DNA of 64,000 bases from Geosiphon pyriformis uo1 (GCA_016748015.1 JAAOMT010000183.1:242052-306051); one strand, 5' to 3'. Positions 8,705 to 52,018 are shown, counted from the first letter of the stretch. The notes: generated by a model not told the origin, from the letters alone. Numbers and translations: made by a program.

Positions 8705-9699
8705 TCAAGCTGCGTGTAACCTTCTTTCCGACTTAAATTTCCGATAGCGATAGGAATCTCTTCTATTGCCGTCCCAAATTGTTTCCGAGACTTTTGCGCG
8801 ATTGCCCTTCAATTCTGTATTTACTTGATCAGGGGTCGAATTTTCAGATGAATCCTGAGATTGAGATTTCCAATTTTTTTGAAAAAAAACTGAATCACGA
8901 ATATGATCTTGAATCTTTGTCAAAGAACGTTCAGGCATCGATTCTCGTATTTTTTCCCAATCTTCCCCAAATTTCTGAAGTGTCTTGAGCAATATTTGAT
9001 TCTCCTCAGGGGTGAAACGAGTTGTTGTGATCGTTGGATCCAAGTGATTAGAGTAACGTTTGGATATTTGGACAAATGATTTTTTACCATGAAATAGATG
9101 ACTTATTTTGACCCATCGTTTGCCATATTGTTGAACTAATTTCATCAATTCCTCATCTTCCTCTTTGGTCCATCTACGAGATATTTGCTTTTGGGATGAA
9201 CTGCAATAATGATGTGCCATCTTTTTAACTTTTCTGACCGATGATTTGGTTGTCTGATTTATTATTCATACCTTTTTAATGCTGGTACTCGTTCAATATC
9301 CTCTTCTTGTATTCCCTTTAGGGCTTCAATATCATTCAAAGTTAAAAAAGTATTTCCTCGCTCCTTTTTCAACTTTGACCATTTACAATGCAAAGCGGAT
9401 ACAGTTCGCCAAGGAAAATACTTTTTACAGACCAGTTTCCAATTTGAGCCATGTTCTTTATAGGCTTGAATTAAGTTTTCCTCTTCCTCAATACTCCATC
9501 TCCGAATATACTCTAGGCCAGACGCGTTAATGTCGGTTGATTCGGTCAATTCGTTCAATTTATCTTGCCTCATTAAATATTGCATATTCCCCATTGTGCT
9601 ATATAAATGAGTATGCATTCCAAAGGGTCTGATGTAGATCATCGTAAAAGTCTCCTTGAAATTAGAGCAAAAGAGGACTCTGCAAGAGTTTTTCAACAT
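8705..9699 (-). CDS. Three-repeat Myb/SANT protein with presequence-like N-terminus (Myb-A); 2 exons
   Basis: Repeats RWSIEEEENL..HGSNWKLVCKKYFPWRT, RWTKEEDEEL..YGKRWVKI and RFTPEENQIL..FGEDWEKI. A 71-nt GTATGA..TGCAG intron at 9201-9271 joins ORFs 9262-9738 and 8705-9220 in frame. First ATG at 9699. Confidence 0.9.
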
Positions 9700-9781
9700 G
9701 CTTGAATGAAAATTTTTACTGAACCAGATGCTGGTCACAGATAAATGGGAAAATAAACATACGGTGTGACCAAATCCTGTG

Positions 9782-9811
9782 TTTATATATTAACCTGGAC
9801 AAAATCACGTG
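9782..9811 (-). promoter_or_regulatory. Candidate TATA box and CACGTG E-box upstream of Myb-A
   Basis: TATATAAA on the minus strand at 9782-9789 and CACGTG at 9806-9811, about 85-110 bp upstream of the ATG. Confidence 0.3.
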
Positions 9812-10141
9812 GATCTGGTTTGTTACACTGTGTGATACATGTATTATGGGGAAATAGATGATATGCATGGCCTAATTTTATTTCCAATTTAAAATCAATA
9901 TTACACATATAATTGGAATCAAAATAGTGGATGTAGAGAATCGTAATAGAAATTTACAAAAATCTTGTGACAATTCATTTAATAAAAGTGGTTTGAAAAT
10001 TGAATATTTGAAAGATATTAATTTTTAGTTTATCTTTTCGAAGCAAAATTCAGGACTTTTGTAAATAAAGGGACATTCAACCTCTTTCTAATCAAAATCT
10101 TCCATAACTTTTAGGATTTGTTAAAATCCTGATCAAATTCC

Positions 10142-10945
10142 TTAACTCGTAACTATTTCCTGAGTCGAAGTCCGGGATGAAGGATTGAGATGCTTTTGAA
10201 AACAATATGAATTGTGATAATGAGTTTGAATCCTTCTTAAAGAACGTCCGGGTAGTAATTTAGTAATGTATTTCCAATCTTCACCAACTTTTTGAATCGC
10301 GTTAAGCAATATTTGATTTTCGTCAGGGGTAAAACGTTTTTTATTGATCGCTGGATCCAAATAATTGCAGTAACGTCGGCACATTTGAACATGAGATTTC
10401 TCGGTTTTAAAGAGATGACTTATTTTGATCCATCGTTTACCGTACAGTTGAACCAAAGTGAACAATTCCTCATCTTCTTCTTCTGTCCATCCTCTGTATT
10501 TTTGCTTTGAATTTTCGTTTTTATTACCGGGTTTTGCTTCTGAGAAGGTCGCAAGATTAATTGGCCGTTTCTGAAGGCTTAAATATTTAGACTTCAAAGC
10601 GCAGTGTGTCCGCTGCGGAAAATACTTTGCAGAAATAATTTTCCAGTTGGTGCCATGCTGTTGATATGCTTCAATCAGGTTATTGCTTTCCTCGAAAGTC
10701 CATCTATCTCTACTTTTTGAGCTAGAAACTTTATTTTCGTTTGATTCTGCGGTCATCAATTTATCAAAGTTGAGAGAGCCCGAATTGCCACTTGCTGTAT
10801 ATGAATGAATATGCTGTATTCGACGAGAGTGGACTGTAATTCTAGTAAGAGATTCCTTTAGGTTTGCAAAACGAAGCGTTTCGTTGATTTTGAAGACTTT
10901 AGAGAAATCAAATCGCATAGTTGATCTTCTGATTGTTAAAGACAT
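10142..10945 (-). CDS. Three-repeat Myb/SANT protein with presequence-like N-terminus (Myb-B); tandem paralogue of Myb-A
   Basis: Repeats RWTFEESNNL..HGTNWKIISAKYFPQRT, GWTEEEDEEL..YGKRWIKISHLF and NYLDPAINKKRFTPDENQIL. R2-R3 is strongly similar to Myb-A. Intronless. Confidence 0.92.
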   Translation of the reverse strand: MSLTIRRSTMRFDFSKVFKINETLRFANLKESLTRITVHSRRIQHIHSYTASGNSGSLNFDKLMTAESNENKVSSSKSRDRWTFEESNNLIEAYQQHGTNWKIISAKYFPQRTHCALKSKYLSLQKRPINLATFSEAKPGNKNENSKQKYRGWTEEEDEELFTLVQLYGKRWIKISHLFKTEKSHVQMCRRYCNYLDPAINKKRFTPDENQILLNAIQKVGEDWKYITKLLPGRSLRRIQTHYHNSYCFQKHLNPSSRTSTQEIVTS

Positions 10946-13327
10946 GCCTTTTTTTGGTGAAAAAGGGTCTACAATAGAAGTAGGAAATAAGCTGAATATA
11001 AATATTTACTCTGTCGATATACTTGCAGTAGGCAACGTTTCCTCTTTAAGCCTATAAAAAATTAATTATGACCAAATATTGCGGGTATCAGACAAAATTA
11101 ATACAGGGTAAACCACCCAAATGCTTCTGACCAGGGTGATTTTCACCAATCTGGTACCAAATCATTTAATGTTTATCAATCGGGAAATATGACACGCTCA
11201 ATGCGATCATTCCCCAATTTTCTCTATTGATCAAAATTCAAAAAGGGTTTAAAAAAGAAATAACCAGCCAAGTCATTGAATAAGGGTAATGAAAACTTGG
11301 CAAATTTTCAAATTAATTGCTCACATAACATTAAAAAGGGGTATTTAAGGTTGTGAGTCAAGATTTTAATTTAAAAATGTCAAATTTTGAAACATTGTGA
11401 TATACGACAAGAGTTTATGCGGTACTGTTTAACTAAACATTTTATTTCAACTTTAGAATTATTTGTATCACATTTTACCTCATTCGCATTAATCAAAAAA
11501 GTTAAATTCAAAATATTAACCAAAAAGGTAGCTCGTTTTTGAGTTACAGCTATTTAATATATTAAAAAATTTAGAATGAATATGGACCAACCATGAATTT
11601 TTAGAATTTTTAGTATTTCAATTTTCAACACCATTTACAAATAAATATTTGTGTTATTTATCAAAATTCTTATAATATTTTAGTTAAGCAGCCAAAATTA
11701 TTTTATATTTAAACTTTCATAGATTAATTATTAAATTTTATATTAAATGTCAATTGCTTTTTTTTAGACCTGTTTTTTTTTTGAAAAATTTATTCATATG
11801 TATTTTTTTTTGTAATCTTATGTAATTAATATTTTATCAATTTTAATCAAATATTTTTTCATAAACAATTTATTGTGTGTTATTAGCCTTAAATATTAAA
11901 ACAGTTATATTTCATAACAATTTATTATTTAATAAATATATATTATATATTTTGCGTTAAACCAAACAAAAAAAATGTATTTTATTTATTTTTTTCTATT
12001 TAAGTAAATAAAAATTTTTTTATTAATCTAAAAAAAAGTAATATAATTTTGATTTAATTGATTCCAATTCCAAAAAAAAGTTATAGTTGCTTTGATCATA
12101 CATTCTAGGCTATGTACAAATTGAGCCTTTACAAATATTTAAAAAGTGATATTTTACAATCAGAAAAAGTAATAATATTTTATTTATGTAACAAAGTATG
12201 AAATGTTATTTTTGGGTCACATTTTGTTTTGTTGATATCTAAGTTTTTCCATTTAAATTTAAAACAAAGAGTAATCTTTTGATCATTCTGGAAGGCACAA
12301 AAATTTTTGATTTTCCGAATTCTTGTGACATTAGAAGTTATTTCTTATCCTCAAAGATTCAAGTCACGATTTCTTTGATATGATTTTCATCTCGGCTCTA
12401 CCAATTACCGAATGAAGTTCAGTTGAAATAGGAGAAAAATATAATTAATTAAAGTAAATTAACATAGCAATTCGCTCATTTCATGATAATATAGCTTTAT
12501 CATCAGACTAAGACTCTAATATAAACACTTTTAGAATTGGAAATTTTTGAAAAGCACAAAAAGAAAGAATTGGATATAAATCAATATACCTAATTTCTAA
12601 AAATATATTTAGTCACAAAATTGTTTCTTTTCTTAGATTTCTAATATTTCTGCCGATGAAAATCATATCATAATCTACCAAAAACGCATGGCTTTAGGAA
12701 AATTCAATTTCTCATACTAAAGAAAAAGATTTTGTATACATTCTTCAAAAATTTAATTTCTAAAGTAAGCAAATTATCCTGTTCAAAAACAAAAATTTTT
12801 ATATTAAATTTTCCAAATTAAATACTAGAACAAGGTTTTTTCGGAGGTTGGAAAAACCCGTTTATAAGTATGAATATTATGAACAAAGAAACAGAATAAT
12901 ATTTACTATTTTTCAATCTGCCTCTTGACCTGACCAAATAAACAATATGATTGGTTTGCCGGAAAATTGAAAAAGAATCAAAATTGATAAAAGTGAAATA
13001 TAAATATCCCAAACGTGTCCGAACAAATATTTTGAATGTTTAATCCCTCGAAACTATACATTTGATTTTATGTACTATCTCTATTTTATAAACAATGTCG
13101 ATGGTAAACAAAAAATCTGAAAGGCAGTTTAGACGCATGTAGAGAACTGAAGTCTTGGCATTAGCTATATAAAATCATAAAAGCTGCTCATTGTTACAAC
13201 CGAAACCAGAGACGTCGTAAACCTTCTAAAGTTGGTTTGAGATTCTGTAAACCAAAAAAGTTGGGCGTTTTAATATTGCTTTAAGAATAATAAAATCCCA
13301 AGTGACAAAACTTCAAGAAGTCAAAAA

Positions 13328-13871
13328 ATGATGACAATATTGTTTAAATATGGGTTTATAATTTTAATAATTACTTTTACAAAGATAATAATTGCTGTGA
13401 ATTCCCAAGGAGGCTATTTGAATTTACGAGAGGGGTAAGAAAGGTTTTAAAAAAGTTCTTATTTTAATTCCTTTTAAAAATATAGCTTGACTCTTTATTA
13501 CGTTCAGCGGATCACCAACATCAGCACAAGCATCGAATTCTGGCTTTTTCCCTACGACCGCTCTATTAGAAAACATTGAACCATACATAAATCATCAAGT
13601 GTCTAAGCGTGACACATCAGTAATACCTTTACAATCCAGCAACTCAATAAATTCAGTTCCAAAAATTATTTCTTCTCTGATAATACCAGTTTCTACTTCT
13701 ACGGCGACTTTATTACCTGTGAATTCTACAGCAATAATAAGGTAAACTTAAACATTATTTGACACATTTTTCTCAGCTCATCAAGTGAAAAACTTTTTAT
13801 ACATAAAAAAAAAGCATAACTGGATCATTAAATTCGACGTTAACCTCTACCCCAACAACAACGAAAGCAGC

Positions 13872-13902
<31 letters not shown>

Positions 13903-17642: not shown

Positions 17643-17939
17643 CTTGCACCAATAAGATAAATTAATATGGCTTAACTTCATAGCCTGCACCCTTTCTTTT
17701 TCGAATAATAAATTCAGTTTTAAAAAGAAATAATTTACTAGCCTAAGTTACTTATATATTCAGAGTAAAGTTTTCATGGCAAAATGAAATTTCCTTCTCC
17801 GCCAAAAATAATCGGAATTCTTGACCAAGTTATTCCGTTCCCATAATTACTTCTCTTTTTAAAGTGGATAATAATTTCACGTGCTCTTCGTCAAAAGAGT
17901 ATAAAAAATAACTTTGGTATCTAGAGATTAATAACTGTT

Positions 17940-19560
17940 AGAGTATATATAATTCTCAATATTAAATTATCTTAATAATTAAATAATAATAAAATTATAA
18001 TAACATTTTTATTTTAAATATAATTATAATTAATTTTATTATTATTTTTATGATATTAATATAAAAATATTTAAATATTCTTTATATCTATTATTTGTGC
18101 ATTTTTTATTTACAATAATATTATTACAAATTAATTAATTTTGTTTTGTATTTTAGTTATATTATTACTGAATAAATAATTTTAAAAGCATTAATATTTT
18201 GATTATTATTTTTTTAATGTTTAATTTTATAATTATATTTATTTAAATATAGTATCTAATAAACTATACATTTATTATTAAATCTGTTTTTGTTTTAAAG
18301 CCAAAACAAAGCTAAATAATTTTTAAAAACTCAAAATTTTATTAATACAAACTATAATGTGCTTAAGATATTAAATAAGCTTTTTTATTAAGTTTTCAAA
18401 TTTTTAATAATAAAAAGGCAAAACATATAAAATTATAATTTATAAATATTTATTCTTTGCTTAAACTTTTAAATATTTTTAATTTTTAAAAATTGAAAAA
18501 AAATTAAGTACATCACTATTTGAAAATAATTTTTGTTAAAAAATGAATAAACCAGTTATTAATTTAATAACATTATGATAAATTTTAAAGTTTGTATTTT
18601 AAAATAAAAACAGTTTTTTTGTTAATTTTTAAAATTTATATTTATCTGCCAAAATTTTGGGTCTTAAGTTAATAATTAAAAAAAGTTGCATAATTAAATT
18701 GATTAATATTTTATTAATTTAAAAAAGTACATATATGTTACATTCAGTAATATAATTTAATTAAAAATTATTAATAGGAAATCACTTTTTTTTAAATAAT
18801 ACTATAATTGAAAATGTTTATTTAATAAATATATTTTTATATTATATTATTTTAAATAAATAAATTAAAAATTCTTTATTTAAATTATATTAAATATTTT
18901 TGTTAAAATTTTATTTACAGATGTTTAGATTAAAAAAATTATATATGAAAATAAAATAGCTAATTATATAATATCAGTATTTAATACATAATTAAGATAT
19001 TTAAAAATAAATATTATTAATAAAATGACAAGAAAGTTTTAATTATAACAATATTAAAGCTTTTAAAAATATAATAATACAAAATTCAACAATAATAAGA
19101 CAAGTTAATAATAATAAAAACATTTTAACAAAAACAATAATAATTTTTTTAAGTAAAACAATAATATTAAAAAATTAAACAAAAACTTTTAAAAATTTCT
19201 ATAGCAAATATTTATACTAAATTAGATATAATTGTAATTGGCTCAAATGACTAATTTTATGTAAAAAACACATTTGTTATACCTATTATAAATATATAAA
19301 TATATTGTATATAAATAAATAATGGTTAAATTATACTTAATATAACATAAAAAAATGTTTTTAATTTAAACCAGTTATTAAAAATTAAAACAGATAATTA
19401 AAATTTAAAACCATAAATATAAACAGTATTTTTAAAAAGTAATCCTTTTACACATTGAACTTGTTAAAATTGCAGCTAAAAAATTTGAACTAATTGCTAA
19501 AATTACACTATCTTGTAGCATTATTCTGTTGAAGAGTTAATTTTTGTTATCTATATTTTT
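17940..19560. repeat. Extremely AT-rich island, likely a decayed repeat or transposon
   Basis: About 1.6 kb almost devoid of G/C and of CpG, with no ORF of 60 aa or more. Similar islands occur at about 11550-12250, 48150-49000 and 53350-54450. Confidence 0.5.
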
Positions 19561-20181
19561 AACTAATCTGACGAGTTCAAAATAATAAAGGTATTAATTT
19601 CTTTTGACTCATTTGAAATTTACAAATATTACTAATAAAATGTGCGCCATCATACAAAAAAGAAATATACTTTCTAATTTCATTAGGAAAGATGTCATCG
19701 GCAAATTTAAGACTAACGCTATACAATTTTTAGTAGAGCATCACAATTCGCATCTTAAGTTGCTTTTGGAGACTATGAAAAATGGTTATTTTTTCAATGT
19801 GTGATATAAATGTATTCAAATCTTTTGAGGATACTTATTATTAATAACATTGAATAATTTGTCTATTTTAATGAGGCTATTAATGTAACTCTATGCTCAA
19901 AGGTGTGTTCAAATTAAGTTTTCCGGAATCTTGTTGTTACATGAAAAATATTTAAAATGAGGGCAAAGTTTTTTGAAAGGAGATGAAAAAATTGAAAACT
20001 AAAATATATATCTTTTTGGTGCTTAAATTGTTAAATTCAATAAATTTTGGGTCGAAAGAAAAAAGTATTTGTGTTTCACAAATGGATTGATAAACGATCA
20101 AAAATGAGATGAGAGTTTTTGGTTTTAAATGTCTTAATAAGGCTTTCCAACCCTTCTTAACTTTCAAACTTGACTTTTGAG

Positions 20182-21492
20182 TTACTTATGATTTATTCGA
20201 TCAGCCCACCAACGTAATTCATCAGGGCAGCCACATCCAACGACATTAACTCGTCTTAATTTAGGAAATTTGGCAGAGACCAACGGTGCAACAATATAAT
20301 CTTCCAGGCCGGCAGGAAATCGAAATTCCAATGTTTCCAAACTCTGAAGTTGTGTTAGCGGGGCGAGCGTATTCATACAAGTGAAGTTTACTGATTCAAA
20401 TGATAAATGTCTTAATGTTTTTGGGAGACCCATGCATAATTCTTTTACGTTAAGAATCAATGAGCTTGAGGTGGTTTTCAAGCGAAATGAGGTCAACTTC
20501 TGCAAGGTGCGAACAAAATTCGAGAGCCTTTGCATTTCTGCTTGGCCTTCTCTGTTCCAGTCAGATCGTTCGAACTGTAAATCTACACTCAAGTTTTCCT
20601 AAAATAAACAAATACTGTCAGCTCAAAGCCTACTCATGCATGTGATTTGATTTTAGTTGGAGATTTCACTTACCAGGTTTGTGCATCCTTGACACAGAAC
20701 TGGATATTTGTCATATTCTAATGGGTGCGAAACGATCTTCAATTCTTGAAAGCTCGAAAGCCAGTTTACTATTTCTATCGGACCGAGTAATAAAAAATCA
20801 TCCGGTGAATCCAAAACAATCCGTGAAGCAGCCGGTGCTAATCTCGACATCATTTTCACAAGAGCTCGTTTAATAGCCGAACGGTATGTAATGTCTCCGA
20901 TTTCATTTTGTTTAATGAACCGGGGATAGGGATATTCTTTCTCCAATGCAGCGACAATTTCAACCTTTGGGTATAAATCAATTGATATTTCCGAATTATG
21001 GGGAATTATTCCTTTTCCCTTTTTTATCCGGAAACTTTCTTTTTGCCCCATGCTCGATAAAATTCCAATCGATTCCCATTTTTCATGACCTTCTTCTGCA
21101 ACAGCCTTGACTCTACTCAACCACGCACCAACCGATTGTCCCAAATTCCAATAGTCGACGGATTTAAGAAATGCCGGGTATTCAAAGGTTGGTTTTTGTA
21201 TTGCCGGTACAAATACGCCAGCTTTCAAAAGTTCTTCTCTTTCAGCAACATTGAGAAATGCAAGGTATATACTTATTATGGTGTCGTTATTTTTTATTTG
21301 AAAAGGGTCACGCCATAAAAGAGAAACCACGTTCCAGCACCAGTGACGATCGACTAATAAGCAATGATACAAGTCCGCCAGTGCGAAATCCGAGAATATA
21401 GCTTGCCATGTTTCTGGTGGAAGCCGTATTGGTTTTTTTTGAACTTGTTCCCCTATCCTATTATATTTTCCAATTTTCGCTGAAACGTTCAT
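20182..21492 (-). CDS. F-box/LRR (RNI-like) protein; 2 exons
   Basis: RLPPETWQAIFSDF..LYHCLLVDRHWCWNVVSLLWRDPF, PTFEYPAFLKSVD and LRR-like LPKTLRHLSF / LQSLETLEF / FPKLRRVNV. Intron 20599-20673. Confidence 0.88.
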
Positions 21493-22746: not shown

Positions 22747-23879
22747 TCATACTCTACATTCTCCGTTTATTTTTGCAACCCAATCTTCAATCTCTACAAC
22801 AGGTCTTTCAGGTCTGTTAATACAATATAAGACTTTACGTAGAGAGGGAAGTGACGCTGATAAAAGTGGCAAGAATACTTCAAGGCTCATGTTAATTGTA
22901 TACTGAAAATTCATAATCTCTAGTCCTTTTAATGTAGCCAGAACATCTAGATTTTTGGTCCCCCTGAATTTTGTTCTCCGGAGGTCTAGATGCCGAATTG
23001 TAATCGGTAAAACTTCTAAAATCGGATAAATATCCTCATAACTTAAATTTCTTCCATGGTAAAGCGAGAGAGTTGAGAGTTGTTTTTGAACTCTTAAAAA
23101 TTGAATAATTGATTCGAGATGCGCAAGAAACTCAAAAGTTTTAAGATCAAGTTGGATATGAATTTCTTTCTAAAAAAAAATGTGAATAAGTATTCTGGAA
23201 ATAAAGTACAAAAAATTCAAATAGAAATCTTTCTGACCAGATTTTGACAGGTTTTTGCAAAAATTGGCAAAAGTTTTAAGGTTGATTGAGAGATAACGAT
23301 ATCAATTTTTTTTATTTTTACAATCCAAGCGAGGTAATTAGGTGGTGCAATTTCCAAATACGGCTCCGATATTTTTATATCAAGTCGAACTAGAGGCGGT
23401 GAAAGACGTGTAAGCATATTAGTCAAAGCCTTTTGTGTCATCAAATATGGACAATTTCCAGCAGACTGTTCTATCCTGGCTAATGAATCCAAGCCACTAG
23501 ATATTCGACAGAATTTTACTAAATTGACCCACATTACGATCCAATTTTCTAAAATGATAGGGGAAAAATCTCGAATAAACGAAGGGTAAACAAAAGTAGG
23601 TAGTGGCAAAGAATCATGTAAAATGACCAGGCCAGCAGATTTTAACTGTGCTAATTCAGCTTTGTTCAAAAATTGAATACAAATAGTAATTACTTTGCTG
23701 AAAAAGATTGGTTGTTCAAAAGGATTTTCCCAAATTAAAGGAACGGCTATCTTGCAAAAAAGTCTATTTACAAATAGGCAGCGAAACAAATCACCCCTTC
23801 TTGCTTTTCTCAGTATTTTCTCGATGATTTCAAAAGGAAGTTGTATTTTCTCTGTGTATCTTACTAGAGCGGATTTCAT
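22747..23879 (-). CDS. F-box/LRR protein, tandem paralogue of 20182-21492; 2 exons
   Basis: QLPFEIIEKIL..LFRCLFVNRLFCKIAVPLIWENPF and PTFVYPSFIRDF. The intron follows CQNL (same position as CTNL in the paralogue). Exon 2 reads LPITIRHLDL, LKGLEIMNF, LPSLRKV, WVAKING. Confidence 0.85.
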
Positions 23880-24357
23880 TTTCACGGTTGGGAGAATGAG
23901 TGCGGTGAAAAAATGAGCTGAGCGACTCGCAATTGTTACCCTATCTATAATCAAATCATTGAGTAGTACAAAAAACTCCTATTGATTCATCGTGACCTTC
24001 TTAGCATAATTTATTGAAAGTGAAAATCTTTAACTTTTTTGGACATCCAATGTTGAATATTCATTTCATTCTTTATTGGAAGAATGTGTAATGAGCTTTT
24101 TTGAAAAGCAATTTCTTGATAAAGTATTCAAATATTTAGGCTCTTTTTACAACCTTCATGTTTTCAACATCAAAAAGTCGTCTACTGAAACCATGAGTCC
24201 GATATTATAGAAAGTCAAATATTAAAGTATGATACAGTTAAATTGAATTTACCAATTTTGTTTGACTGGTAAAATTTTTTAAAACAAATAAATATTTAAA
24301 CTGAAACATGATTAAAATATATATTTAAAACGAAAATTTCAATCTTTTAGGTTTTTT

Positions 24358-27300
24358 CTATAGTGGAATATTCATCCCAACATCGATTATATCTTCTGGA
24401 GGGATATGCCAATTACCGTGCTCCTCTCTTGAGTTTTTCAACAGGGTCACATAAAAATTCAAGAGCTTCGTTCTCAGCCAACTTCCAGTATTCGGGAGAA
24501 TCTGCTGCCGGCCTACGACATATGTAACGACCTGTTTTTCGGGATTAAACTCCGGTTTCAAAGAGTCTTGTTCAGGATCAATCTTATATATAGCCTCGAT
24601 TAATTTTACCATAAACTCTTTCGATTGAAATACTTGTTCCATATATCCATAGCGTGCAATTACTCGATATGTGCCTTCGTATTGACCCACTTTACGCACT
24701 ACCAATCGATCTTCTTCGCCGACATATGGAACAGCTACAGGACGGATAGAAATAAAAACCAAGGTTTCGGGAACCGCAGGTAAATGTTGTATAAAGTGAC
24801 TAAAAGTGAGTGGTACACCAAGGCCCGAATCTTGATAAAACATCCCGATTCCGGGTAGACGCTGTACTTTGAAACCAGTATCAAGTAGTCGTAATTGACT
24901 TCGTAGACGTACTTGTTGTATTGTGATATTTGTTATACTATTTTGTGTGGTATCTTGAGCATGCGCAGTTGTCATTACTTGATGTTGACCTTTTTCCGTT
25001 TCAATTGATGAGTTAACTTTCTCAGAAAGGTTCAGTTGAGATGGTTCTTTCGTTAGTGAAGTGACGCTGTCGTTTGTGTGCGATTGGTCAAAATCATCCA
25101 TGAATAGGTTGCTAAGTCTTATTTTATTTTTTAATTCATATTCGATCCTAAGATTCGTACCCCATTTCCAGATTAACATAATGCTAGCAAGCAAGGATCC
25201 GAACATCAATGTAAACCAACCGCCATCTGGAATTTTGTTGAGAGTAGAACCTAGGAAACACGCATCGATGAAACCGAAGATAAGTAGAAAAGAGATCGAA
25301 TATATTCTATTTAAGTTCCAAACGACTCGTATTGTGATCTGTAAAGTATTAAAAAGATTTTGAGATAGGAAAATAGAAAATGTAGATATTGAAATAAAAA
25401 AAATTTGGAGAATTGCAAAGAACTTACCGATAGTAAAATTGTAGTTATCAACATGACCGAAGCAACAGCCACACCATAGGCATGTGTGAGGTTCGCAGAC
25501 GCTTTGAATGATATAACCATAATCACAACCAAAATCATCAAAATCCAGTTGACTAAAAAGATTTTCCGTCTTGATTAGCGAAATTTTAATAGGAATGCCA
25601 AAACTTGTTTTCAAATACTTACTTTCTGGAATGTAGATTTGCCCTCGATGGAACCTTGAGGTATGTATAATCTATAAAATTGAATTTAAGAAATTAGCTA
25701 TATTCCGACTCAAATTTTGAAAAATTCCAACTCTTACCTGGACTCGAGGGAAAAAATCAAGTTGCATTCCTTGATGTATAAGAGTAAATGTAGCCGAAAT
25801 CATAGCCTGAGAACCGATAATTGTGGCGCAGATAGCCAATAAAAAAATAAGCCAGTAAATGAAACCTCCTTGAGGAATTGTGCTCCAAAAAGCATTTGAA
25901 TAAAGTTCTGACTCTTCCAATAGTCTGGCAGCTTGACCCATGTATGCTAGAATCAATGGTGGGTAGACGAAACAAGAAAACGAGATTTGGATTGAACGAT
26001 GATTGAAATGGCCTAAATCGGCGTATAAAGCTTCTACTCCCGTGACTGCAAGTAAAACACCGCCAAGATCATAAAAACTGTGTGGTCCGTTACGAGTAAA
26101 GTAATTGAAAGCATAATATGGGTTATATGCTTTGAAGATTTCTGGATGGTCACTCAAGTTCCAGATTCCAACAATTGCAAGACTTAAAAGCCAAAAAGAG
26201 ATGAATGGGGCAAATAACGAGCTCACTTTGTCAGTTCCGAATCGTTGGCCAAAGAAAAGGAGCACGATGATGACGCTGGAAATCAGAAAAAATTTAACTT
26301 TAGCGATATGAGAACATAATTTATGATTGCATTCACCATGATAACGGGACAACAGCATGTTCCATGTGATTTATCGGAACTTTTAAACCCTCCACTGCAG
26401 ATAAAACTGAAATAGCTGGCGTCAGCAGGCCATCACTTAGCACCAACGAGGACGCTAAAGCGACTAAAATCAACAAAAGTTCTTGAACTCTTTTGTTCCT
26501 TGCGATAAGATTTGGCTTGTCTTTCGCACTGTGAATCGATACTGCATCGTAATTTACAATGTTTAGATCGTCTTTTCGTTGTTCACCACGAATAACCAAG
26601 CCTGAAAACCTATTTCAAAAATGATTGAATATATAAGAAGTGAGGACTTTTTGTTTAAGAGATTGAGATTATGTTTATGAATATACTTACCGGGCAATCA
26701 GTGAATAAAGAGCAAACGTTCCTCCTTCACCATTATCATCGGCCTTTAAGACAAAAAAGACATACTTCACTAATGGAATAATTGTCCTTTGAGATTTGAG
26801 AAAGTAAGAAAATTTTTAAAAGTTCAGGAAACGATGGAAGACTTTGAATATAAAGTGGTTCGAGCACATACAAGGACCATATTATGAGAGAAAGAACACC
26901 TGTTATTCGAATTGAAAAAGAGTTAAAAAAGCCTATGATTTAAAAAAATTGTTAAACAAAGGTCTATTATTCCAATTCCTTTACCGTAAACATCATCATT
27001 CTTGGGCGGCTCCGTGAAAATAGAGGAATACACGTAGAGAGGTGATGTACCAATATCCCCGTAGATGACTCCTGATAATTCATTGTCAATGCATTTTTAA
27101 AGGTTTAGAAATTTTAAATATTCCATTTTTAAATTCTTTATAAATTCTTTAGAACACTCACCCAAAGCCTTGAATGCTAACAATAAATTCCCGAAGTTTG
27201 TAAGCTGGAAGGCGAGAAAGGAGATAGGTGTGTAGGTTATTTCAATTAAGTTTTACAAAAGCTTTCGAAATCAAATTAATTTTAGGGTGTATAGAAAAAA

Positions 27301-29410: not shown

Positions 29411-30631
29411 TTTAATTATGCATCTCTTACTTGAATTCTTTTTATTTAAGAAACAAACCAGCCTGTTCCAAGAAAAAAGGAATTTAGGTTTATCAAATGT
29501 TAGAATGTAATTTTTTTTACTAAATTTATTTTTAAGTTTAGTTCGAAAGAATAATTTTTACCAAGAGCTTCCTTGTACATGTATCCATAAATCCACAATT
29601 TTTCCTTTGTAGATATGTGTCTCGACCCAATCCAGATGTCTATTGATTTTTGAGATGATATTGTTTTCTAAATTGAAACTTTTGCATTACATATCTTGTG
29701 TTTAAAAAAAACTTTTCTAATATTTCTGAAAGCCTAATATGAAATATTTCAAACTTGAGTGATTTCTGCGTTTTGAGAATATAGTATTGATTCTTGATAG
29801 CTTTTGCCGTCTGCTGAGTGAAATATCTTTTTGCGATAATTTTTCATTTTGAACTATGTTACCTTCGAGCCCCAATCAAAGTTATAATTTCTTCGAAATT
29901 CCATTTCTTAATTGAGAAGCGGTCAGTGACTCATTTCATATATTAAACTATTTTTTTGCTTATTAAATTTATTATAAAAGGTATTCTCCTAAACTTAAAA
30001 AATAACATATACTAATGATTTAAGAATAATTTAACTCGAAACGAAAGCTAAATAGTGAAGAAACTCTTTAATTTATTTTAAAGTAAGCTTTGGATAAGTC
30101 ATAAACTTGAAGATGGAAAGTTTTATTTTTAACTTTTTTATTCAAAATCTTTAAGTGTAATGTATTTACAAATAAAAATAATGAATTTTTTTTTTGAAAA
30201 AAATTCATAATTATTAAAGCAATTAAGAGATTAAATTAAAATTTTAACAAGTACTTTGTGCGCTCAAGAACTTCAATAAATTCGAAGTGTGTTTTTTGTG
30301 ATCATCGTTCAGTAGACATATTTCAATGAAAACAAAAGGAGAATACATTTATTTATTCAAAAGTTGAAAGTTTTTGCTTCACTTAATTCGTCTCTATCTT
30401 TAACTTTTAGATGTCATTTTATTCTAGTATTGTAAAATTTCTACTGATAATTTGGTAACTCTTAGGTTTTGAAATTTCTATTAAATTCATCGCATTAACA
30501 TTAGCAAGCGCAAAGTAACTTTTCAGGATTATCGTTTCGAAAGAGAAAATGAACTTGCTAATTAAAGTTTTTAGAAGATATTTTTAAAGAAATTAATATT
30601 TTAAAAATTGAAAAAAAGTTTTTATTTCCCA

Positions 30632-31422
30632 NNNNNNNNNNNNNNNNNNNNNNNNNNNNNNNNNNNNNNNNNNNNNNNNNNNNNNNNNNNNNNNNNNNNN
30701 NNNNNNNNNNNNNNNNNNNNNNNNNNNNNNNNNNNNNNNNNNNNNNNNNNNNNNNNNNNNNNNNNNNNNNNNNNNNNNNNNNNNNNNNNNNNNNNNNNNN
30801 NNNNNNNNNNNNNNNNNNNNNNNNNNNNNNNNNNNNNNNNNNNNNNNNNNNNNNNNNNNNNNNNNNNNNNNNNNNNNNNNNNNNNNNNNNNNNNNNNNNN
30901 NNNNNNNNNNNNNNNNNNNNNNNNNNNNNNNNNNNNNNNNNNNNNNNNNNNNNNNNNNNNNNNNNNNNNNNNNNNNNNNNNNNNNNNNNNNNNNNNNNNN
31001 NNNNNNNNNNNNNNNNNNNNNNNNNNNNNNNNNNNNNNNNNNNNNNNNNNNNNNNNNNNNNNNNNNNNNNNNNNNNNNNNNNNNNNNNNNNNNNNNNNNN
31101 NNNNNNNNNNNNNNNNNNNNNNNNNNNNNNNNNNNNNNNNNNNNNNNNNNNNNNNNNNNNNNNNNNNNNNNNNNNNNNNNNNNNNNNNNNNNNNNNNNNN
31201 NNNNNNNNNNNNNNNNNNNNNNNNNNNNNNNNNNNNNNNNNNNNNNNNNNNNNNNNNNNNNNNNNNNNNNNNNNNNNNNNNNNNNNNNNNNNNNNNNNNN
31301 NNNNNNNNNNNNNNNNNNNNNNNNNNNNNNNNNNNNNNNNNNNNNNNNNNNNNNNNNNNNNNNNNNNNNNNNNNNNNNNNNNNNNNNNNNNNNNNNNNNN
31401 NNNNNNNNNNNNNNNNNNNNNN
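30632..31422. other. Assembly gap (N run)
   Basis: A run of N; the ORFs spanning it are artefacts. Confidence 1.
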
Positions 31423-31762
31423 GAGATGGAAAATAATTTTTCTTTAAAAGCTCCCAATTATTGCCATGTTCCATAAAAGCCTTTAAAAGTATTTTCTTAT
31501 CCTCAGAGCTCCATTTTTGGTAGGTTTTTTGGCCAACCATTATATGATTACTTAGTTCAGCAACGGGCAACGATTTTTTTTCCTCTATAGAGGCAGGGGA
31601 GTTTTGATTTAACCTAACTGATGTGTTAATATGTCGAAGCCCATTTTTATAGATTTCGGTGTGTAATAATTTTTTAAATCCTTGACAAGACTGTCTTCCA
31701 GAAGGAATCTTTATAAAATTCAATAAAATCATTTGGTAGTGACCGATGTTTTCAAATGGCAT
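31423..31762 (-). CDS. Myb/SANT protein (Myb-C), 5' part only, truncated by the gap; presequence-like N-terminus
   Basis: KWSSEDKKILLKAFMEHGNNWELLKKNYFPS matches repeat 1 of Myb-A and Myb-B. The N-terminus contains LRHINTSVRLNQ. Confidence 0.85.
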
Positions 31763-39898: not shown

Positions 39899-39939
39899 AT
39901 TCTCTAGGTAAAATAATTTATTTATTTATTAATTAAATA

Positions 39940-46900: not shown

Positions 46901-47762
46901 GAGGTCAAAGAAGTTAATGATGTCAAAGTTGGAACAATGCAGAAGATTTCAGCTTTATCATCAAGTTATTCCCCCTCTGAAGAAATATCAAAGGCAATAA
47001 CAAAATCAGTTGCTTCAAAACTACCGAAAAAGAGATCCGCTTCCAATGGAATTCAAGACCTAAAATATTTAGAATCATCTAATAAATCTCGAAATCGAGC
47101 CATCTCACAGTCAAAGTTAATTCTATGCGTAGTATGTGGGTTTCTCTATTGTTGATTTTCTAACATAAATTCCTAATCTGACGACTTTGGAATAAATCTT
47201 GATTTTTAGCAGCATAATTCTAACAATTTGAAGTCTTTATGTCTCTTCGGTATTCTACTTATATCAAAAATGCGGATATAGAAGTGACTACATTTCAATT
47301 GGTCATTTAGGTTATTCAACATCAGCTTACCACTTTGGCTACCAATCATTATGTGTCATGAATGGGCAAGAAACAGTGAATATAATGCAAGGAGAAGTCG
47401 GCGCTTCTATTGAATCTGCTGAGGGCTCGAATCGGCAAAATAAAATATCCTTGATTCTAATGGATTGCACTATGGTAATTTTTTGTTTTACTTGAGTGAT
47501 TAATTTCTAAAATTCTTATATTTTGCGATAATATCAAGCTGCTTTTTCTGCTATAGCTAAAAATGTCAGGATTTGCTACGTCCAAAGCCATTCGTGCTTT
47601 AGGTCACCTCAATCTGAAATTCCTATTGTTGCATTAACCGCTTCTGCCGATAAAGACACTGGATATCAATGTTTAGAAAATGGAATAAATGATTATCTTT
47701 CAATGCCGTTGAAGATTTCCCAACTTAAGGATAAGCTAGTCCAATCGATTAGTGACAATTAA
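40939..47762 (+). pseudogene. Dual hybrid histidine kinase pseudogene (PAS-GAF-HisKA-HATPase-REC-GAF-HisKA-HATPase-REC-like-REC)
   Basis: Motifs D[C]SGTPLGPIETW, EECYFTFSYSPI, ARRLKTLSELG, degenerate H-box KIMNICHE*, IFQRFYQV..HEGTDIGLALVKELIKQHGG, VLIAEDNADM, DIMMPSMNGFELL, GADDYMTKPF, LANTSHELRTPL, DTGIG, DGTGLGLSICK, LMDCTM, IPIVALTA. In-frame stops at about 43697, 44850 and 45075, with frameshifts near 45200 and 47610. Confidence 0.88.
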
Positions 47763-49422
47763 ACAACCTTCAAACCACATTTAAGAACTAAGGCAAAAAT
47801 ATAAGAGCAATGAGAATCTCCTAATTTAAGATTTTTCTCTTTTCAGCTCTACATTTAATTGTAGAATTCAGCATATAAGGTCTATAATGAAGACTTGACT
47901 GTATTTTATCACAATACCCAATTTCAAGCCCACATCATCTTTTTTTACACGCAACATATATATTTTCCTAGATAGCTCTTACCTAAAATTTAAGAGATAG
48001 AACGAATTTTACTTTGGAAATATGTTTTAAAGTAAATTTCTTTTTTGAAATATGAAAATTTTCTAATTCTATGGTTTTAAATCGTAAAAATAACAAATTA
48101 AAACGATTATATAGTATGAAAAATTATATTAATTGAGATAATAAAAGTCGCAAATTCAAAATTATTTTTAAAGAAAATATAAATTGGGGGGAAATTCTCT
48201 TTCATAAAAAATATCAATAGAATATAAGATGAAACAAATAAGTAGCATATTAATTACGTAAAAGATCTTGAGATAATTGAAAATATTTAAATGCTGTATT
48301 TATATATATTGTTATTACAAATAATTATCATATATATTAATAAGTTTATAAATTAAAGTTTTGTTAATACAGAGGATAATCAATATTAAATTAACAGATA
48401 ACTTTATTTATACATATAAATCTCAATTTTATGATTAAATTTAGAATTTTAATTACAACATAATAAAAAAATGATCATTTAAAAAAAAAACTTTTTTAAA
48501 TCACTTAATGCATTTAATTAAATGATAAGAATGATTTGATTTTTCATATATTTTGTGCTTTTTAAAGTTGGTTTTAAACAATCTTTATGATGGTTTTCAT
48601 ATTATATCCAATTTTTTTAATAATTTTAAATCACTTTTTTTATTATTTGTTTTTAAATTAAAAAATTTTGAAAATATAAGATTAAAAACCATATAAAATT
48701 AAATTTTTTTGGTTTGATCTAAATAAAATTTTAATTGAATCAATACTATAAACAGTCATCATAAGCAGAATTCTGTTATAGATTCGTTTTGATTAAAAAT
48801 TATTATAATTTATTTATATTACAATTGGTACTTATTAAATTACAATTGAAATTTATAACCACTTTTTAATAACTACCTAAAAGGTTTCATTTGATAATAA
48901 ATTTCCATCATTCCTAGAAAGTTTAATAATTTTTCTAGAAATTGGATTTCATAGTTATATTCGAAACTAAAATCTCATTTTTATTCTCCCGAGTTATTGT
49001 CAAAAAATTGATTATATATATAATTAATACTACTTCCTAAGCAAAGAAAAACAGAATAACAGTGATGGCACCGAGGCATAAAAGCCGCAAATTCTAGTAA
49101 AACGTATACTGGCTATTGCTGAGCCAATTTTAATGCTAAAATAGTTGATTAGTAAAACGTTTCCAAGTTTAATATCTTTCTTGAATAAAGCATGTAAATC
49201 AACCGATTCAAGATTTACCTTACTCTTAAATGATTTTAATTTGCTTCTAATAATATTTTGGCAATTTAATTTGAATTCAAATTTAGGTATGCCATGGGAT
49301 AGAAATTGAAAAAAACATATCATGGCAATTATTTTTTTGATTCACAATTTATACCTTTGATTTTTATTTAGCAAAGATCACGACAAAAACTGATTACATA
49401 AAAAATTAAATTATGTGATTAG

Positions 49423-49452
49423 TGATTTGATGATTTGATGATTTGAGATTTG
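49423..49452 (+). repeat. TGATTTGA x3 tandem repeat about 120 bp upstream of Myb-D
   Basis: Three exact 8-mers plus a partial copy are directly visible. Confidence 0.7.
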
Positions 49453-49570
49453 TCACAAACGAAAACGGCAAAGATAGTCGACGAGTTTGCTATTTATTCA
49501 AAAAATCTTTTGTGTAGATTTTCACAGCCTGTCCTCTTTGATTTACCTCTCTAAAATTTAAATTAATAAA

Positions 49571-52018
49571 ATGCTTTTAGTGACGAGATCGTTTCGAATA
49601 CTTAATTTTACAAAGCATGTTTTAGCCACAAAAAATTTCATCACTTCAAAATCTTTTATTTCACAGATGCCGAAAATTCTTATCTTAAAGCAGTGGACCG
49701 CGGTTGAAACCAAAAAGTTGATGGATGGTGTGAGAAAATATGGCACAAATTGGGAATACTTACAAAATACCTTTTTTCCAGAAAGAAAACCTCAAGATTT
49801 GGAGCGAAAATATCGGCGAGAAATGGAATATTTCTCACCTAAAAAAAAGCTACCTATTCGCAAAGGTACACGGAAAAAATCTAATTCCCCACTTGTTGCG
49901 ATTTGGACACCGAGAGAGGATCAAAAGTTAAAGGAAGCTGTCGAACGACATAGTAGAAAATGGGATATGATCTCCGAAGAGTATTTCCGGTCAAAAAGAA
50001 CACCAGAAAGTATAAGAAATCGATATTTTATCATTTCATCAGATACAAGATTCGTCCAAGGTAGCTCTGACTGGAATTCTCAAGATTCACAGAAATTAAA
50101 AACAGCAGTGGAAAAACATGGCCGAGATTGGGCATTTATCACACAAGAATACTTTGATTCAAAGTGGACCCCAGCCGCTTTATTTGTAAGATTTTGCCAA
50201 ATACAGAGAAAAGAGGCCGTTAATGAAAGAATTCAAAACCCGGAATCACATATTACTTTCGATACTCAACCAAATATAAGGCCTTCAGTCTTAACTATTC
50301 CTCCAACGACGGGAGTCCCTTTAGTCAAAAAAATAGTTGCAGCGAAAAAAACTAATCTAGTCGTACAAACATCCCCAATTGAACAAAGCAATGCACCAGA
50401 AAAAGTAATAAATGCAGGGGAAAAAGATCCTATAATTAATCAAAATCGCGTAGCGACAGTAAAACCTTTAATTAAAGAAATATCTCGAGGAATAAATTTG
50501 CCCACAATAAAAGAGCTATCTCAACCTAAAGCAGTAACTGCAGTGGATGACAAAAATCTCATAGTGAAAGCAACACCCTTAATTAAAAACATATCTCAAA
50601 TCACGGAAAAGCCTATTGTAAAAGGGTTTTCGCCAACGATAGAAATCTCGACAAAAAACCAAATTCCGTCTGTGGCAAGATTTTCTCGAACGAAAGCATC
50701 CGAGAATGAAGAAATAAATCAAGAAAAAGAGATGCCTAAGATTAAAGAGCCTTTGCAAAACAAAGTTATAACATTAATCAAAGAAATACCTGAAATGAGA
50801 AAATCGCTTAATATCAAAGAGCCTTCGAAAACCAAATTAATATCAACAACATCTGTAATGAGAAAACCACCTACAATAAAGGAGTCTTCACAAATCAAAA
50901 TATCACTAATCAAAGAAATACCTGAAGCTAGAGAAACACCAACCAAAGCAATATCACCATTCAAAAAAATTTCTCTAGTGAAAAAAGCGCCTATTGTCAA
51001 AGAGCCTGCGCAAAGCAAATCAATATTACCAGCCAAAAAAACATATGAAGCTATTAAAGAGCCTTCGCAACCCAAGTTAATATCACTGGTCAAAGAAATA
51101 AGTTTAATCCAAAAGCCTTCGCTAAACGAATTAAGATCCTCAGTTAAAGAAATACCTATAATCCAAAAACCTTTACAAATTAAATTAAAAGAACCATTTA
51201 AAGAAATACCGAAAGAGACAAAATCGCCTCCCGTGAAAGAATTTTCGGAAACCAAAGTAATAACACCAGTGAAAGAAATACCTATAGTGAAAAAAACGTC
51301 TACCATCCCAATAAAATCATCAATCAAAGTGAGAAAACCGCCTACCAAAGTAACATCACCAGTTAAAGAAATACCTGTAGTTAGAGAGTTATCAAAAGCA
51401 GAGTTATATCTAGTAGTACAATTAATAAAAATGAAAGAGCAAGGCCCATCGTCATATAAAACTCTGTCAACAGGACTGATTTGTGAAAATGAAATTCCTC
51501 TTGAGATAGGTACTTATTCAGCGAAGAGGAGTCGGTTAAGTAAGTGTATAAACGAATTGTTGAAATCTGCCTTCATTTTTCTCACTTTTGATTTATTTTA
51601 TTTAGGTCAAAGCCTAGCCATGGAATTTCAAAAGGAATATAGTCGTCATCGAATTCGGCTTTCGAAAATATTACAAAAGCTAGTTGAAATCGATTCGCCC
51701 ATAGGAAATAAAAAAGTTTATTATTCTCCATCTATCAGTTCCGGAAAAGACAAGAATCAAACCTCTAGCGCACCTACCGAGTTGAGTGAAGAAGACAAAA
51801 CTAGGCTTCGTTACCATGAATTGCTCCATCCGACCATACCCATAGTACATGTAAATCAGGGTCCATTCAATCCTGATGAAAAGATGGCTTTTGATTACGC
51901 CTTCTTGAAGTATGGAGATAGTTGGGATGAAATATCTGAGAAAGTTGGGTCTAGAACCCCACAGCAATGCATGTTGCATTGGCGTAGTTTAAAAACTTCC
52001 AAACAATTGGGGAAATGA
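49571..52018 (+). CDS. Multi-repeat Myb/SANT protein (Myb-D): presequence-like N-terminus, 3 Myb repeats, K/P/I/E-rich repeat spacer, C-terminal SANT
   Basis: QWTAVETKKLMDGVRKYGTNW, IWTPREDQKLKEAVERHSRKW, DWNSQDSQKLKTAVEKHGRDW, repeated (I/V)KEIP units and a C-terminal GPFNPDEKMAFDYAFLKYGDSWDEISEKVGSRTPQQCMLHW. Probable 96-nt in-frame intron at 51510-51605. Confidence 0.92.
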   Translation: MLLVTRSFRILNFTKHVLATKNFITSKSFISQMPKILILKQWTAVETKKLMDGVRKYGTNWEYLQNTFFPERKPQDLERKYRREMEYFSPKKKLPIRKGTRKKSNSPLVAIWTPREDQKLKEAVERHSRKWDMISEEYFRSKRTPESIRNRYFIISSDTRFVQGSSDWNSQDSQKLKTAVEKHGRDWAFITQEYFDSKWTPAALFVRFCQIQRKEAVNERIQNPESHITFDTQPNIRPSVLTIPPTTGVPLVKKIVAAKKTNLVVQTSPIEQSNAPEKVINAGEKDPIINQNRVATVKPLIKEISRGINLPTIKELSQPKAVTAVDDKNLIVKATPLIKNISQITEKPIVKGFSPTIEISTKNQIPSVARFSRTKASENEEINQEKEMPKIKEPLQNKVITLIKEIPEMRKSLNIKEPSKTKLISTTSVMRKPPTIKESSQIKISLIKEIPEARETPTKAISPFKKISLVKKAPIVKEPAQSKSILPAKKTYEAIKEPSQPKLISLVKEISLIQKPSLNELRSSVKEIPIIQKPLQIKLKEPFKEIPKETKSPPVKEFSETKVITPVKEIPIVKKTSTIPIKSSIKVRKPPTKVTSPVKEIPVVRELSKAELYLVVQLIKMKEQGPSSYKTLSTGLICENEIPLEIGTYSAKRSRLSKCINELLKSAFIFLTFDLFYLGQSLAMEFQKEYSRHRIRLSKILQKLVEIDSPIGNKKVYYSPSISSGKDKNQTSSAPTELSEEDKTRLRYHELLHPTIPIVHVNQGPFNPDEKMAFDYAFLKYGDSWDEISEKVGSRTPQQCMLHWRSLKTSKQLGK

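Follow-up and report, generated by a model that had tools for sequence, protein, structure and literature searches.

Four genes for Myb-repeat proteins, Myb-A to Myb-D, lie in a 64,000-nucleotide stretch of the genome of Geosiphon pyriformis, a member of the Glomeromycotina; this whole stretch is called the window here. An earlier reading of the sequence alone had proposed that all four proteins carry N-termini resembling mitochondrial presequences, and the question raised by the locus was whether these N-terminal segments (leaders) are targeting signals or something else. The four genes were found where the sequence-only reading had placed them (Table 1). Scores against the Pfam profile PF00249, whose cut-off is 24.4 bits, were far above this value for Myb-D (111.8 bits), Myb-B (107.6 bits), and Myb-A exon 2 (75.1 bits), and reached 34.7 bits for Myb-A exon 1 and 26.3 bits for the Myb-C fragment; the two Myb-A exons were searched separately, not as a spliced protein.

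Table 1. Myb-related features of the window
Feature	Position	Strand	Basis or remark
Myb-A, whole gene	9699..8705	-	one 71-nt GT..AG intron
Myb-A exon 1: Myb repeat 1 preceded by leader residues 1-67 (9499-9699)	9272..9699	-	ORF, Pfam PF00249
Myb-A intron, 71 nt, GT..AG	9201..9271	-	run X1 contig links 9200 to 9272
Myb-A exon 2: two more Myb repeats, C-terminal tail, stop codon	8705..9200	-	Pfam PF00249, two stretches, E 4.6e-21
Myb-B, 267 aa, no intron: three Myb repeats preceded by leader residues 1-81 (10703-10945)	10142..10945	-	Pfam E 3.3e-31, three stretches
Decayed Myb repeat 1 relic	29745..29936	-	tblastn matches of N-terminal parts of Myb-A and Myb-B; two in-frame stops in translation
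Assembly gap, 791 N; should contain the remainder of Myb-C	30632..31422		flanks colinear with L029
Myb-C 5' part: leader and first half of repeat 1	31423..31762	-	ORF, Pfam E 8e-6; truncated by assembly gap
Myb-D, 815-aa ORF with 32-residue leader (49571-49666)	49571..52018	+	Pfam E 1.6e-32, four stretches
Myb-D repeats	three at 49694 to about 50230; last at 51860-51991	+	

The family to which these genes belong was expanded and fast-diverging, as had been claimed: it comprised about 55 Geosiphon loci, many of them in tandem arrays, at least 13 matches contained in-frame stops, and some clusters included pseudogenes. The family ancestor was a five-repeat Myb gene common to Ambispora, Paraglomus, Acaulospora, and Diversispora, and the tryptophans were invariant across the family alignment. 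In the tree, Myb-D grouped with the Ambispora, Paraglomus, and Acaulospora orthologues, every other Geosiphon copy fell in a single clade (support 99/98), and the leaderless clades were derived. The four window genes are most likely products of an amplification, specific to Geosiphon and largely in tandem, of a c-Myb-type DNA-binding protein with five repeats that is common to Glomeromycotina. We assign Myb-D as the conserved orthologue, carrying a long low-complexity insert rich in K, P, I, and E between its third and last repeats. Myb-A and Myb-B lie in tandem and have been cut down to three repeats (Myb-A exon 2 was 55% identical to Myb-B residues 144-262), and Myb-C is a recent duplicate interrupted by an assembly gap. 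Word-index searches with Myb-B and with residues 1-235 of Myb-D returned almost no match besides the genome's own models, and the Protein Atlas returned generic Myb clusters only; homologues beyond the genome's own models were collected with an exhaustive HMMER search.

The Myb repeats themselves were well defined. In an AlphaFold2 model of Myb-B, the repeats were predicted with a pLDDT above 90 and formed three helices each, and residues 1-79 had a pLDDT of 40 to 54 and were unstructured. The closest solved relative of Myb-B was c-Myb R1R2R3 (chain 1h88_C), which matched residues 79-246 in one stretch (E 4.3e-19).

Myb-A and Myb-B, the two of the four genes that the transcript evidence covers, are transcribed, and Myb-A is spliced. 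The Myb-A intron was absent from the run X1 transcript contig, and the junction agreed with the public gene model P0005. Transcript contigs spanned 8596-9754 for Myb-A, with no ATG from 9754 to 9699, and 10163-11080 for Myb-B, with no ATG upstream of the start. The sequence-only reading had named transcript starts downstream of the leaders as evidence against it; in both genes, the first AUG instead preceded the leader. In these two genes, the leader occupied the position of a presequence, which follows the first AUG of the mRNA. In the public models of Myb-A, Myb-B, and Myb-D, the leader was partly or wholly missing; P0005, for instance, began at the internal Met 28 of Myb-A.

The predicted N-terminal extensions were real as reading frames, with 67 (A), 81 (B), 83 (C), and 41 (D) residues upstream of the first repeat tryptophan. 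The further claim that all members carry them was not borne out, as about 15 of 27 family ORFs began just 10 to 27 residues ahead of the first repeat. Two pairs of near-identical copies differed by a leader frameshift alone (a 14-nt deletion or a 1-nt indel), and in near-identical copies the Myb ORF after the leader lesion stayed open for at least 190 codons. One such copy, L029, lies elsewhere on the same contig and is near-identical to the Myb-C leader. The gap flanks at 31423 and 30631 were colinear with L029, in which 742 nt separate the flanks, compared to 791 N here, and these 742 nt encode repeats 1 to 5 and a stop codon. The 14-nt deletion affects the leader of L029, whose repeat 4 also contains an in-frame stop. 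Everything past the start of repeat 1 in Myb-C falls within the gap.

The N-termini had also been described as poor in acidic residues. This was true of Myb-D, whose segment ahead of the first repeat was free of acidic residues, but in Myb-A, Myb-B, and Myb-C the first acidic residue stood at positions 16, 13, and 4, respectively. A matrix presequence is 15 to 60 residues long, carries a net positive charge, and nearly lacks acidic residues. The acid-free stretch and net charge were 45 residues and +5 for Myb-D, 15 and +3 for Myb-A, 12 and +5 for Myb-B, and 3 and +2 for Myb-C (25 and +4 when read from Met 11). Taken singly, the leaders of Myb-A, Myb-B, and Myb-C were unremarkable. As a group, the 12 long-form leaders ran for a median of 25 residues without an acidic one, compared to 11 in 322 small ORFs (p 0.013) and 7 in 21 long non-Myb ORFs (p 0.003); these control sets were small, and the small ORFs were mostly non-coding. 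The long-form leaders were more basic than both control sets, and their net charge exceeded that of the non-coding ORFs. Many leaders combined basic with hydrophobic character, an uncommon feature for a DNA-binding tail.

It had further been argued that the N-termini do not align with each other and that unrelated leaders had kept this composition independently. In our comparison, however, the Myb-A leader could be aligned with that of Myb-B over 28 residues (36% identity, E 5e-4), and the leaders share ancestry. Since the leaders are homologous, their acid-poor excess should be weighed as about a single observation and not as four. An acid-poor, basic leader was kept in the Ambispora, Paraglomus, Diversispora, Funneliformis, and Acaulospora homologues while its sequence diverged. 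In other Glomeromycotina genera, leader and repeats shared a single ORF, and the leader portion was uninterrupted over 60 to 100 codons, a length beyond chance. The analysis established the leader as an ancestral coding segment, disordered and basic, with few acidic residues.

The leaders were then compared with genuine presequences of the same fungus. The positive controls were four proteins (Sod2, ATP synthase alpha, MPP alpha, and MPP beta); mitochondrial Hsp70, whose presequence is located in an upstream exon, was left out. Like the window leaders, Geosiphon matrix presequences were N-terminal and net positive, with few acidic residues in the first 20 to 46 positions, but they were rich in Ala and Arg and had a higher hydrophobic moment. 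The maximal moment (18 residues, 100 degrees; a crude measure) was 0.26, 0.32, 0.40, and 0.36 for Myb-A to Myb-D, and the mean leader moment of the Geosiphon family was 0.383, compared to a background of 0.385, so there was no excess of amphipathic helix. The leaders of six other Glomeromycotina homologues were also at background level (0.24 to 0.55, mean 0.36), whereas the genuine presequences, few as they are, ranged from 0.44 to 0.66 with a mean of 0.566. Ala and Arg made up 1.2% and 6.2% of the window leaders, 14.4% and 10.0% of the genuine presequences, and 3.8% and 5.0% of non-coding ORFs. Residue usage in the leaders was thus near that of translated AT-rich non-coding DNA and unlike that of the four presequences. 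AT-rich coding alone was partly rejected as the source of the composition because the acid-free length and net charge exceeded those of non-coding ORFs.

An exact match to the MPP/Oct1 R-10 motif had been reported in Myb-C. The pattern was present there, and also in the leaders of Myb-A and Myb-D, but R-x-[FLI]-x-x-[STG] occurred in 10 to 11% of control N-termini as well, and the matches appear to be at chance level. Within the family, it was part of a recurrent element, R-x-[IL]-[NG]-x-[ST], which was found at the extreme N-terminus of leaderless paralogues.

Our preferred reading, which we hold at about even confidence, is that the window proteins work in the nucleus as Myb factors and carry a disordered basic tail. 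This reading is supported by the placement of the repeats with c-Myb R1R2R3 in Pfam and in the solved-structure search and by the unstructured leader in the AlphaFold2 model. It is also supported by the roughly 55 clustered loci, with pseudogenes in some clusters, by the many leaderless ORFs and the derived position of leaderless clades, by the background-level moment and the composition of the leaders, and by the frameshifting of leaders and their partial or full omission from public models. Against it stand the excess of the leaders over both control sets, the persistence of the trait beyond sequence divergence (as in targeting peptides), the open leader ORFs of other genera, the combination of hydrophobic and basic residues, and the number of positive controls, which was only four. 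In the nucleus, the proteins would bind specific DNA sequences through the recognition helices of their repeats, and the leader would be a fast-evolving disordered tail that may tune how the protein binds DNA, how stable it is, or which partners it contacts. The resemblance of the leader to a presequence would then reflect a basic tail encoded in a genome of 30% G+C, not a canonical matrix-targeting helix.

A second reading, which we consider possible but tentative, is that the leader is an ancestral mitochondrial or dual-targeting signal, that leader-bearing members, among them Myb-A, Myb-B, and perhaps Myb-D from Met 1, are imported and bind mitochondrial DNA or RNA, and that nuclear forms arise from leaderless paralogues or internal start codons. 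The acid-poor and basic character of the leaders, their disorder in the AlphaFold2 model, their place after the first AUG in the Myb-A and Myb-B transcripts, and their ancestral presence in the same ORF as the repeats across Glomeromycotina would all suit such a signal. The moment, at background in Geosiphon and in the six other homologues, the departure from the fungus's own presequences, and the repeated loss or frameshift of leaders do not. Many family members also had an acidic, activation-domain-like spacer after the leader, which suits a nuclear activator, and dozens of sequence-specific binders for one small mitochondrial DNA would call for special explanation. A literature search found no paper on a mitochondrial Myb protein.

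Proteins of other fungi also bear on import. Among 26 Mucorales ten-repeat Myb orthologues, chosen by homology alone, the leaders were 20 to 68 residues long and contained 1.4% D/E, compared to 13.3% elsewhere in the protein, and 17 of the 26 had no D/E at all. Identity was 19% in the leaders and 41% in the rest, and the leader moment was above background. Similar leaders were found in Basidiobolus, Paraphysoderma, chytrid, and Calcarisporiella homologues. The leaders of the Mucorales orthogroup thus look presequence-like in textbook style, and these findings count for targeting. The weight of the Mucorales group for Geosiphon is reduced, however, in that it forms a separate orthogroup, apparently unrelated to the Geosiphon family, and a search for a one-to-one Geosiphon orthologue of the ten-repeat protein found none. 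An aromatic-F/L-P-x-R repeat signature was considered as a link between the two groups and dropped, as ordinary three-repeat Mybs matched it too.

A broader proposal is that early-diverging fungi have an unrecognised class of Myb-repeat proteins with mitochondrial presequences, made up of the single-copy ten-repeat proteins of Mucorales and the five-repeat proteins of Glomeromycotina, the latter amplified to dozens in Geosiphon. Some Geosiphon copies would be imported and others would be nuclear after leader loss, and the imported ones would act on mitochondrial DNA (transcription, replication pausing, or mobile-element control). We regard this proposal, too, as possible but tentative. If targeting were true, the organellar proteins that bind nucleic acids, such as HMG-box, mTERF, and PPR proteins, would include Myb repeats as well. 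This would also open a way into the control of mitochondrial genes in Mucoromycota, to which the factors described in Dikarya and animals may not extend. The most clear-cut object for the targeting question is the Mucorales ten-repeat orthogroup, which lies outside the window and belongs to an order that includes genetically tractable fungi. If the leaders are disordered tails only, the locus documents a Myb family that one lineage, an unusual symbiotic fungus, has amplified on a large scale, which is useful for annotation but ordinary.

An improbable third reading is that part of the leaders is untranslated, such that Myb-D and possibly Myb-C start at an internal Met before repeat 1 and the sequence upstream is an open 5' UTR. 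In the case of Myb-D, the public model P0003 (G9A89_007266) begins at Met 33 and omits the leader, the bases preceding Met 33 resemble a splice acceptor, and the leader has an intergenic-like GC content of 0.29, compared to 0.38 in the rest of the ORF. The frame is open for only 3 codons upstream of the ATG and for 35 upstream of Met 33, a length that would be open at random in 6% of cases. Moreover, L029, with its frameshifted leader, restarts at the Met preceding repeat 1, where many paralogues also begin. This reading is opposed by the first AUG of the Myb-A and Myb-B transcripts, which is the upstream ATG, by the length of the 67- to 83-codon leaders, whose chance of staying open is 0.5% or less, and by the long leaders that Myb-D orthologues elsewhere have in the same ORF. 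The idea that the leader is a decayed extra Myb repeat or other folded domain was rejected, as the leader gave no Pfam match and AlphaFold2 predicted it at low confidence with no bundle.

Returning to the repeats, the Geosiphon family resembles c-Myb, A-Myb, B-Myb, and plant MYB3R in having consecutive repeats with regularly spaced tryptophans, and the repeats of Myb-B are colinear with c-Myb R1R2R3 and modelled confidently as three-helix units. Unlike that group, the family has a five-repeat ancestor, a basic leader of 40 to 100 residues, and about 55 loci in one genome, and in repeat 1 the aromatic-F/L-P-x-R signature replaces the usual PGR motif. The analogy with PPR and mTERF families that the sequence-only reading had drawn is limited to an expanded repeat family with presequence-like leaders; the fold differs, organelle localisation is putative here, leader amphipathicity is at background, and expansion alone is shown. 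The nuclear protein SNAPC4 (SNAP190), a subunit of the snRNA-activating complex that has multiple Myb repeats but no such leader, matched Myb-B at E 1.6e-10. Its Myb region was colinear with the Mucorales ten-repeat group over 295 profile positions (E 1.6e-39), but this match may reflect repeat number only, since SNAPC4 gave 0.47 bits per position, compared to 0.77 for c-Myb.

Trichomonas vaginalis also has a lineage-specific Myb expansion, a large and fast-diverging set of short Myb proteins. The Geosiphon expansion differs in being a tandem birth-and-death process within Glomeromycotina that goes back to one five-repeat ancestor, which already had the N-terminal leader. Sequence matches included PDB chains named MYB21, MYB3, and MYB24, which we take to be T. 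vaginalis proteins.

The four Myb genes named in the sequence-only reading were real, with Pfam PF00249 scores far over the cut-off; in the case of Myb-A, the two exons were searched separately and not as a joined protein. A public Geosiphon pyriformis protein, G9A89_007266, was identical to part of the Myb-D open reading frame (ORF), and the Myb-D insert was missing from the orthologues of other genera.

Features of the window (C596:242052-306051, in a 128-Mb assembly of approximately 30% G+C)
Feature	Coordinates	Strand	Description
Aspartyl protease ORF	3369-4538	-	between Myb genes
Myb-A	9699-8705	-	one intron, 9201-9271 (71 nt, GT..AG)
Myb-B	10945-10142	-	intronless; three repeats; tandem neighbor of Myb-A
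AT-rich stretch	18000-20000		approximately 2 kb at only 15% G+C; short degenerate AT-rich tandem repeats
F-box-like ORFs (two)	20653-21492, 23217-23954	-	between Myb genes
KUP/HAK-type potassium transporter exons	24358-26358	-	between Myb genes
Decayed Myb repeat-1 relic	29745-29936	-	two in-frame stops; approximately 700 nt past the gap; a fifth remnant of the family
Myb-C	start 31762		half a repeat, then the gap
Myb-D	49571-52018		three N-terminal repeats, long Lys/Pro/Ile/Glu-rich insert, last repeat
Myb-D insert	50275-51700		low-complexity, Lys/Pro/Ile/Glu-rich; 54-nt unit x2.2 at 51092-51210

Nearly all of Myb-C would fall in the unread gap, and a copy of the locus (L029; C596:180644-183778), which was located approximately 60 kb upstream of the window on the same contig, indicated what the gap should contain. 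The Myb-C leader (the segment before the first Myb repeat) and its upstream flank were 92% identical to L029 over 472 nt with gaps counted, and near-identical apart from indels; the DNA just past the gap was 99% identical. The gap flanks were colinear with L029, because both matched it and their spacing was 742 nt in L029 versus 791 N in the window. These 742 nt encoded repeats 1 to 5 and a stop codon. L029 was a pseudogene: its leader carried a 14-nt deletion, and repeat 4 was interrupted by an in-frame stop.

Scored matches to the Myb repeat numbered at least 150 in the genome. The 88 matches to Myb-B merged into approximately 55 loci on 12 contigs, most of them in tandem arrays (contigs C669, C507, C520, C788, and C310 and the window's own contig), and at least 13 matches carried in-frame stops. 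According to the family alignment, the ancestral architecture had five repeats, the last of them distinctive, and single proteins with this architecture also occurred in Ambispora gerdemannii, Paraglomus occultum, Acaulospora morrowiae, and Diversispora. Myb-D clustered with these orthologues in a maximum-likelihood tree, the remaining Geosiphon copies formed a single clade (support, 99/98), and the two most amplified subclades, both leaderless, were derived. Thus, the leader was ancestral and repeatedly lost. In each of two near-identical copy pairs, Myb-C/L029 and the genes at loci L030 and L040, the two members differed by a leader indel. In the latter pair, which was 98% identical overall, the Myb ORF downstream of the indel was intact, and seven of the eight differences in the displayed part of the alignment fell in the leader.

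For a c-Myb-like family, the prior was nuclear, and our literature search did not turn up any publication on a mitochondrial Myb protein. We gave an even chance to the family being nuclear Myb factors whose basic tails are disordered. The sequence-only reading had taken the leaders to be mitochondrial-presequence-like. Twelve long-form leaders of the family were set against two control sets, one of 322 small ATG-ORFs that were mostly non-coding and the other of 21 long non-Myb ORFs; the positive controls were only four Geosiphon presequences (Sod2, ATP synthase alpha, MPP alpha, and MPP beta). The acid-free length of the leaders differed from those of the small ORFs (p 0.013) and the long non-Myb ORFs (p 0.003).

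Leader properties relative to controls (Ala and Arg are for the four window leaders; the hydrophobic moment is a crude measure)
Property	Myb leaders	Small ORFs	Long non-Myb ORFs	Genuine presequences
Median acid-free length	25	11	7	20-46 (range)
Acid-free over at least 20 residues, with net charge of at least +3	58%	17%	5%	4/4
Mean hydrophobic moment	0.383	0.385	0.386	0.566
Ala	1.2%	3.8%	7.0%	14.4%
Arg	6.2%	5.0%	4.3%	10.0%

The moments of Myb-A, Myb-B, and Myb-D were 0.26, 0.32, and 0.36, respectively, and 10-11% of control N-termini contained the R-10 pattern, which had been pointed out in Myb-C. That the leader-bearing members are targeted to mitochondria, or dually targeted, was a tentative possibility: a leader that was conserved yet sequence-divergent and acid-poor raised its odds a good deal, but amphipathicity was at background level, the composition was unlike that of genuine presequences, an acidic spacer lay behind many leaders, and the leader was often lost. 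The claim that the N-termini do not align with each other did not hold, as the Myb-A and Myb-B leaders shared a 28-residue segment (36% identity; E, 5e-4). Local alignment of the long-form leaders suggested patchy recurrent elements, which global alignment did not keep in register. The shared composition was thus largely inherited and did not represent four independent cases.

An exhaustive HMMER search with Myb-B yielded 16258 relatives, and acid-poor basic N-termini were present in 24 of the best 134 that started with Met. The bearers that were looked up all belonged to early-diverging fungi (Ambispora, Paraglomus, Acaulospora, Funneliformis, Basidiobolus, Paraphysoderma, two chytrids, and Calcarisporiella). 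This look-up was biased toward the trait, and two further sets were free of such bias. In a set chosen by the C-terminal repeat signature, all three non-Geosiphon species with a complete model had the leader. A single uninterrupted ORF encoded both leader and repeats in Ambispora, in Diversispora, and in a Funneliformis homologue, and the leader moments were mostly at background. In Ambispora, the gene (L081:455-1311) directly upstream of the one for the five-repeat Myb protein showed weak matches to MIX23, which resides in the mitochondrial intermembrane space; this proximity was probably a coincidence.

A search with one Mucorales protein identified a single orthogroup across the order, a single-copy protein of approximately 620 aa with ten repeats. 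In the 26 members measured from the orthogroup alignment (A2; P0078, P0058, P0150, P0161-P0182, and others), the leader was 20-68 residues long, non-conserved, and basic. Acidic residues made up 1.4% of the leader versus 13.3% of the remainder of the protein and were entirely absent from 17 leaders; identity was 19% in the leader versus 41% in the remainder, and the mean moment (0.449) was over background. Presequences behave in this manner, and nothing in the window was as clean a candidate for a mitochondrial Myb protein as this orthogroup. SNAPC4, which is nuclear, gave a long colinear match to the orthogroup profile, but with fewer bits per position than c-Myb. A search for a one-to-one Geosiphon orthologue of the Mucorales protein did not find one.

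It was unlikely that the leaders are partly untranslated, a reading that concerned mainly Myb-D and Myb-C. The Myb-A intron was absent from one contig of the public sequencing run X1 over the Myb-A/Myb-B region, which indicated that the run was RNA-derived. The X1 contigs extended to 9754 (Myb-A) and 11080 (Myb-B), with no further ATG ahead of those at 9699 and 10945. Thus, both leaders were within the mRNA, and the upstream ATG was the first AUG in the transcript contigs; transcript starts downstream of the leaders, which the sequence-only reading had named as a refutation, did not apply to Myb-A and Myb-B. The public gene models started at internal Met residues (Met 28 in Myb-A, Met 10 in Myb-B, and Met 33 in Myb-D), and those of Myb-A and Myb-B were therefore probably too short. 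The probability that their leaders (67 and 81 codons) stayed open by chance was at most 0.5%. For Myb-D, only 35 codons were open upstream of Met 33 (chance, 6%), leader G+C was intergenic-like (0.29 versus 0.38 in the remainder of the gene), and the bases preceding Met 33 resembled a splice acceptor; in itself, this leader was weak evidence. The contig end at 9754, which preceded the Myb-A ATG by 55 nt, carried ten extra G/C-rich letters similar to the terminus of a template-switch cDNA adaptor; if they derive from one, 9754 would be a true mRNA 5' end.

The leader was neither a folded domain nor a decayed repeat, because AlphaFold2 with the family alignment modeled the Myb-B repeats confidently and gave residues 1-79 a pLDDT of 40-54. 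A separate Geosiphon protein of 306 aa with two Myb/SANT repeats (L010:1381-2298, minus strand; contig C726, approximately 797 kb) had a strongly presequence-like N-terminus that was Arg-rich and free of acidic residues in its first 25 positions.
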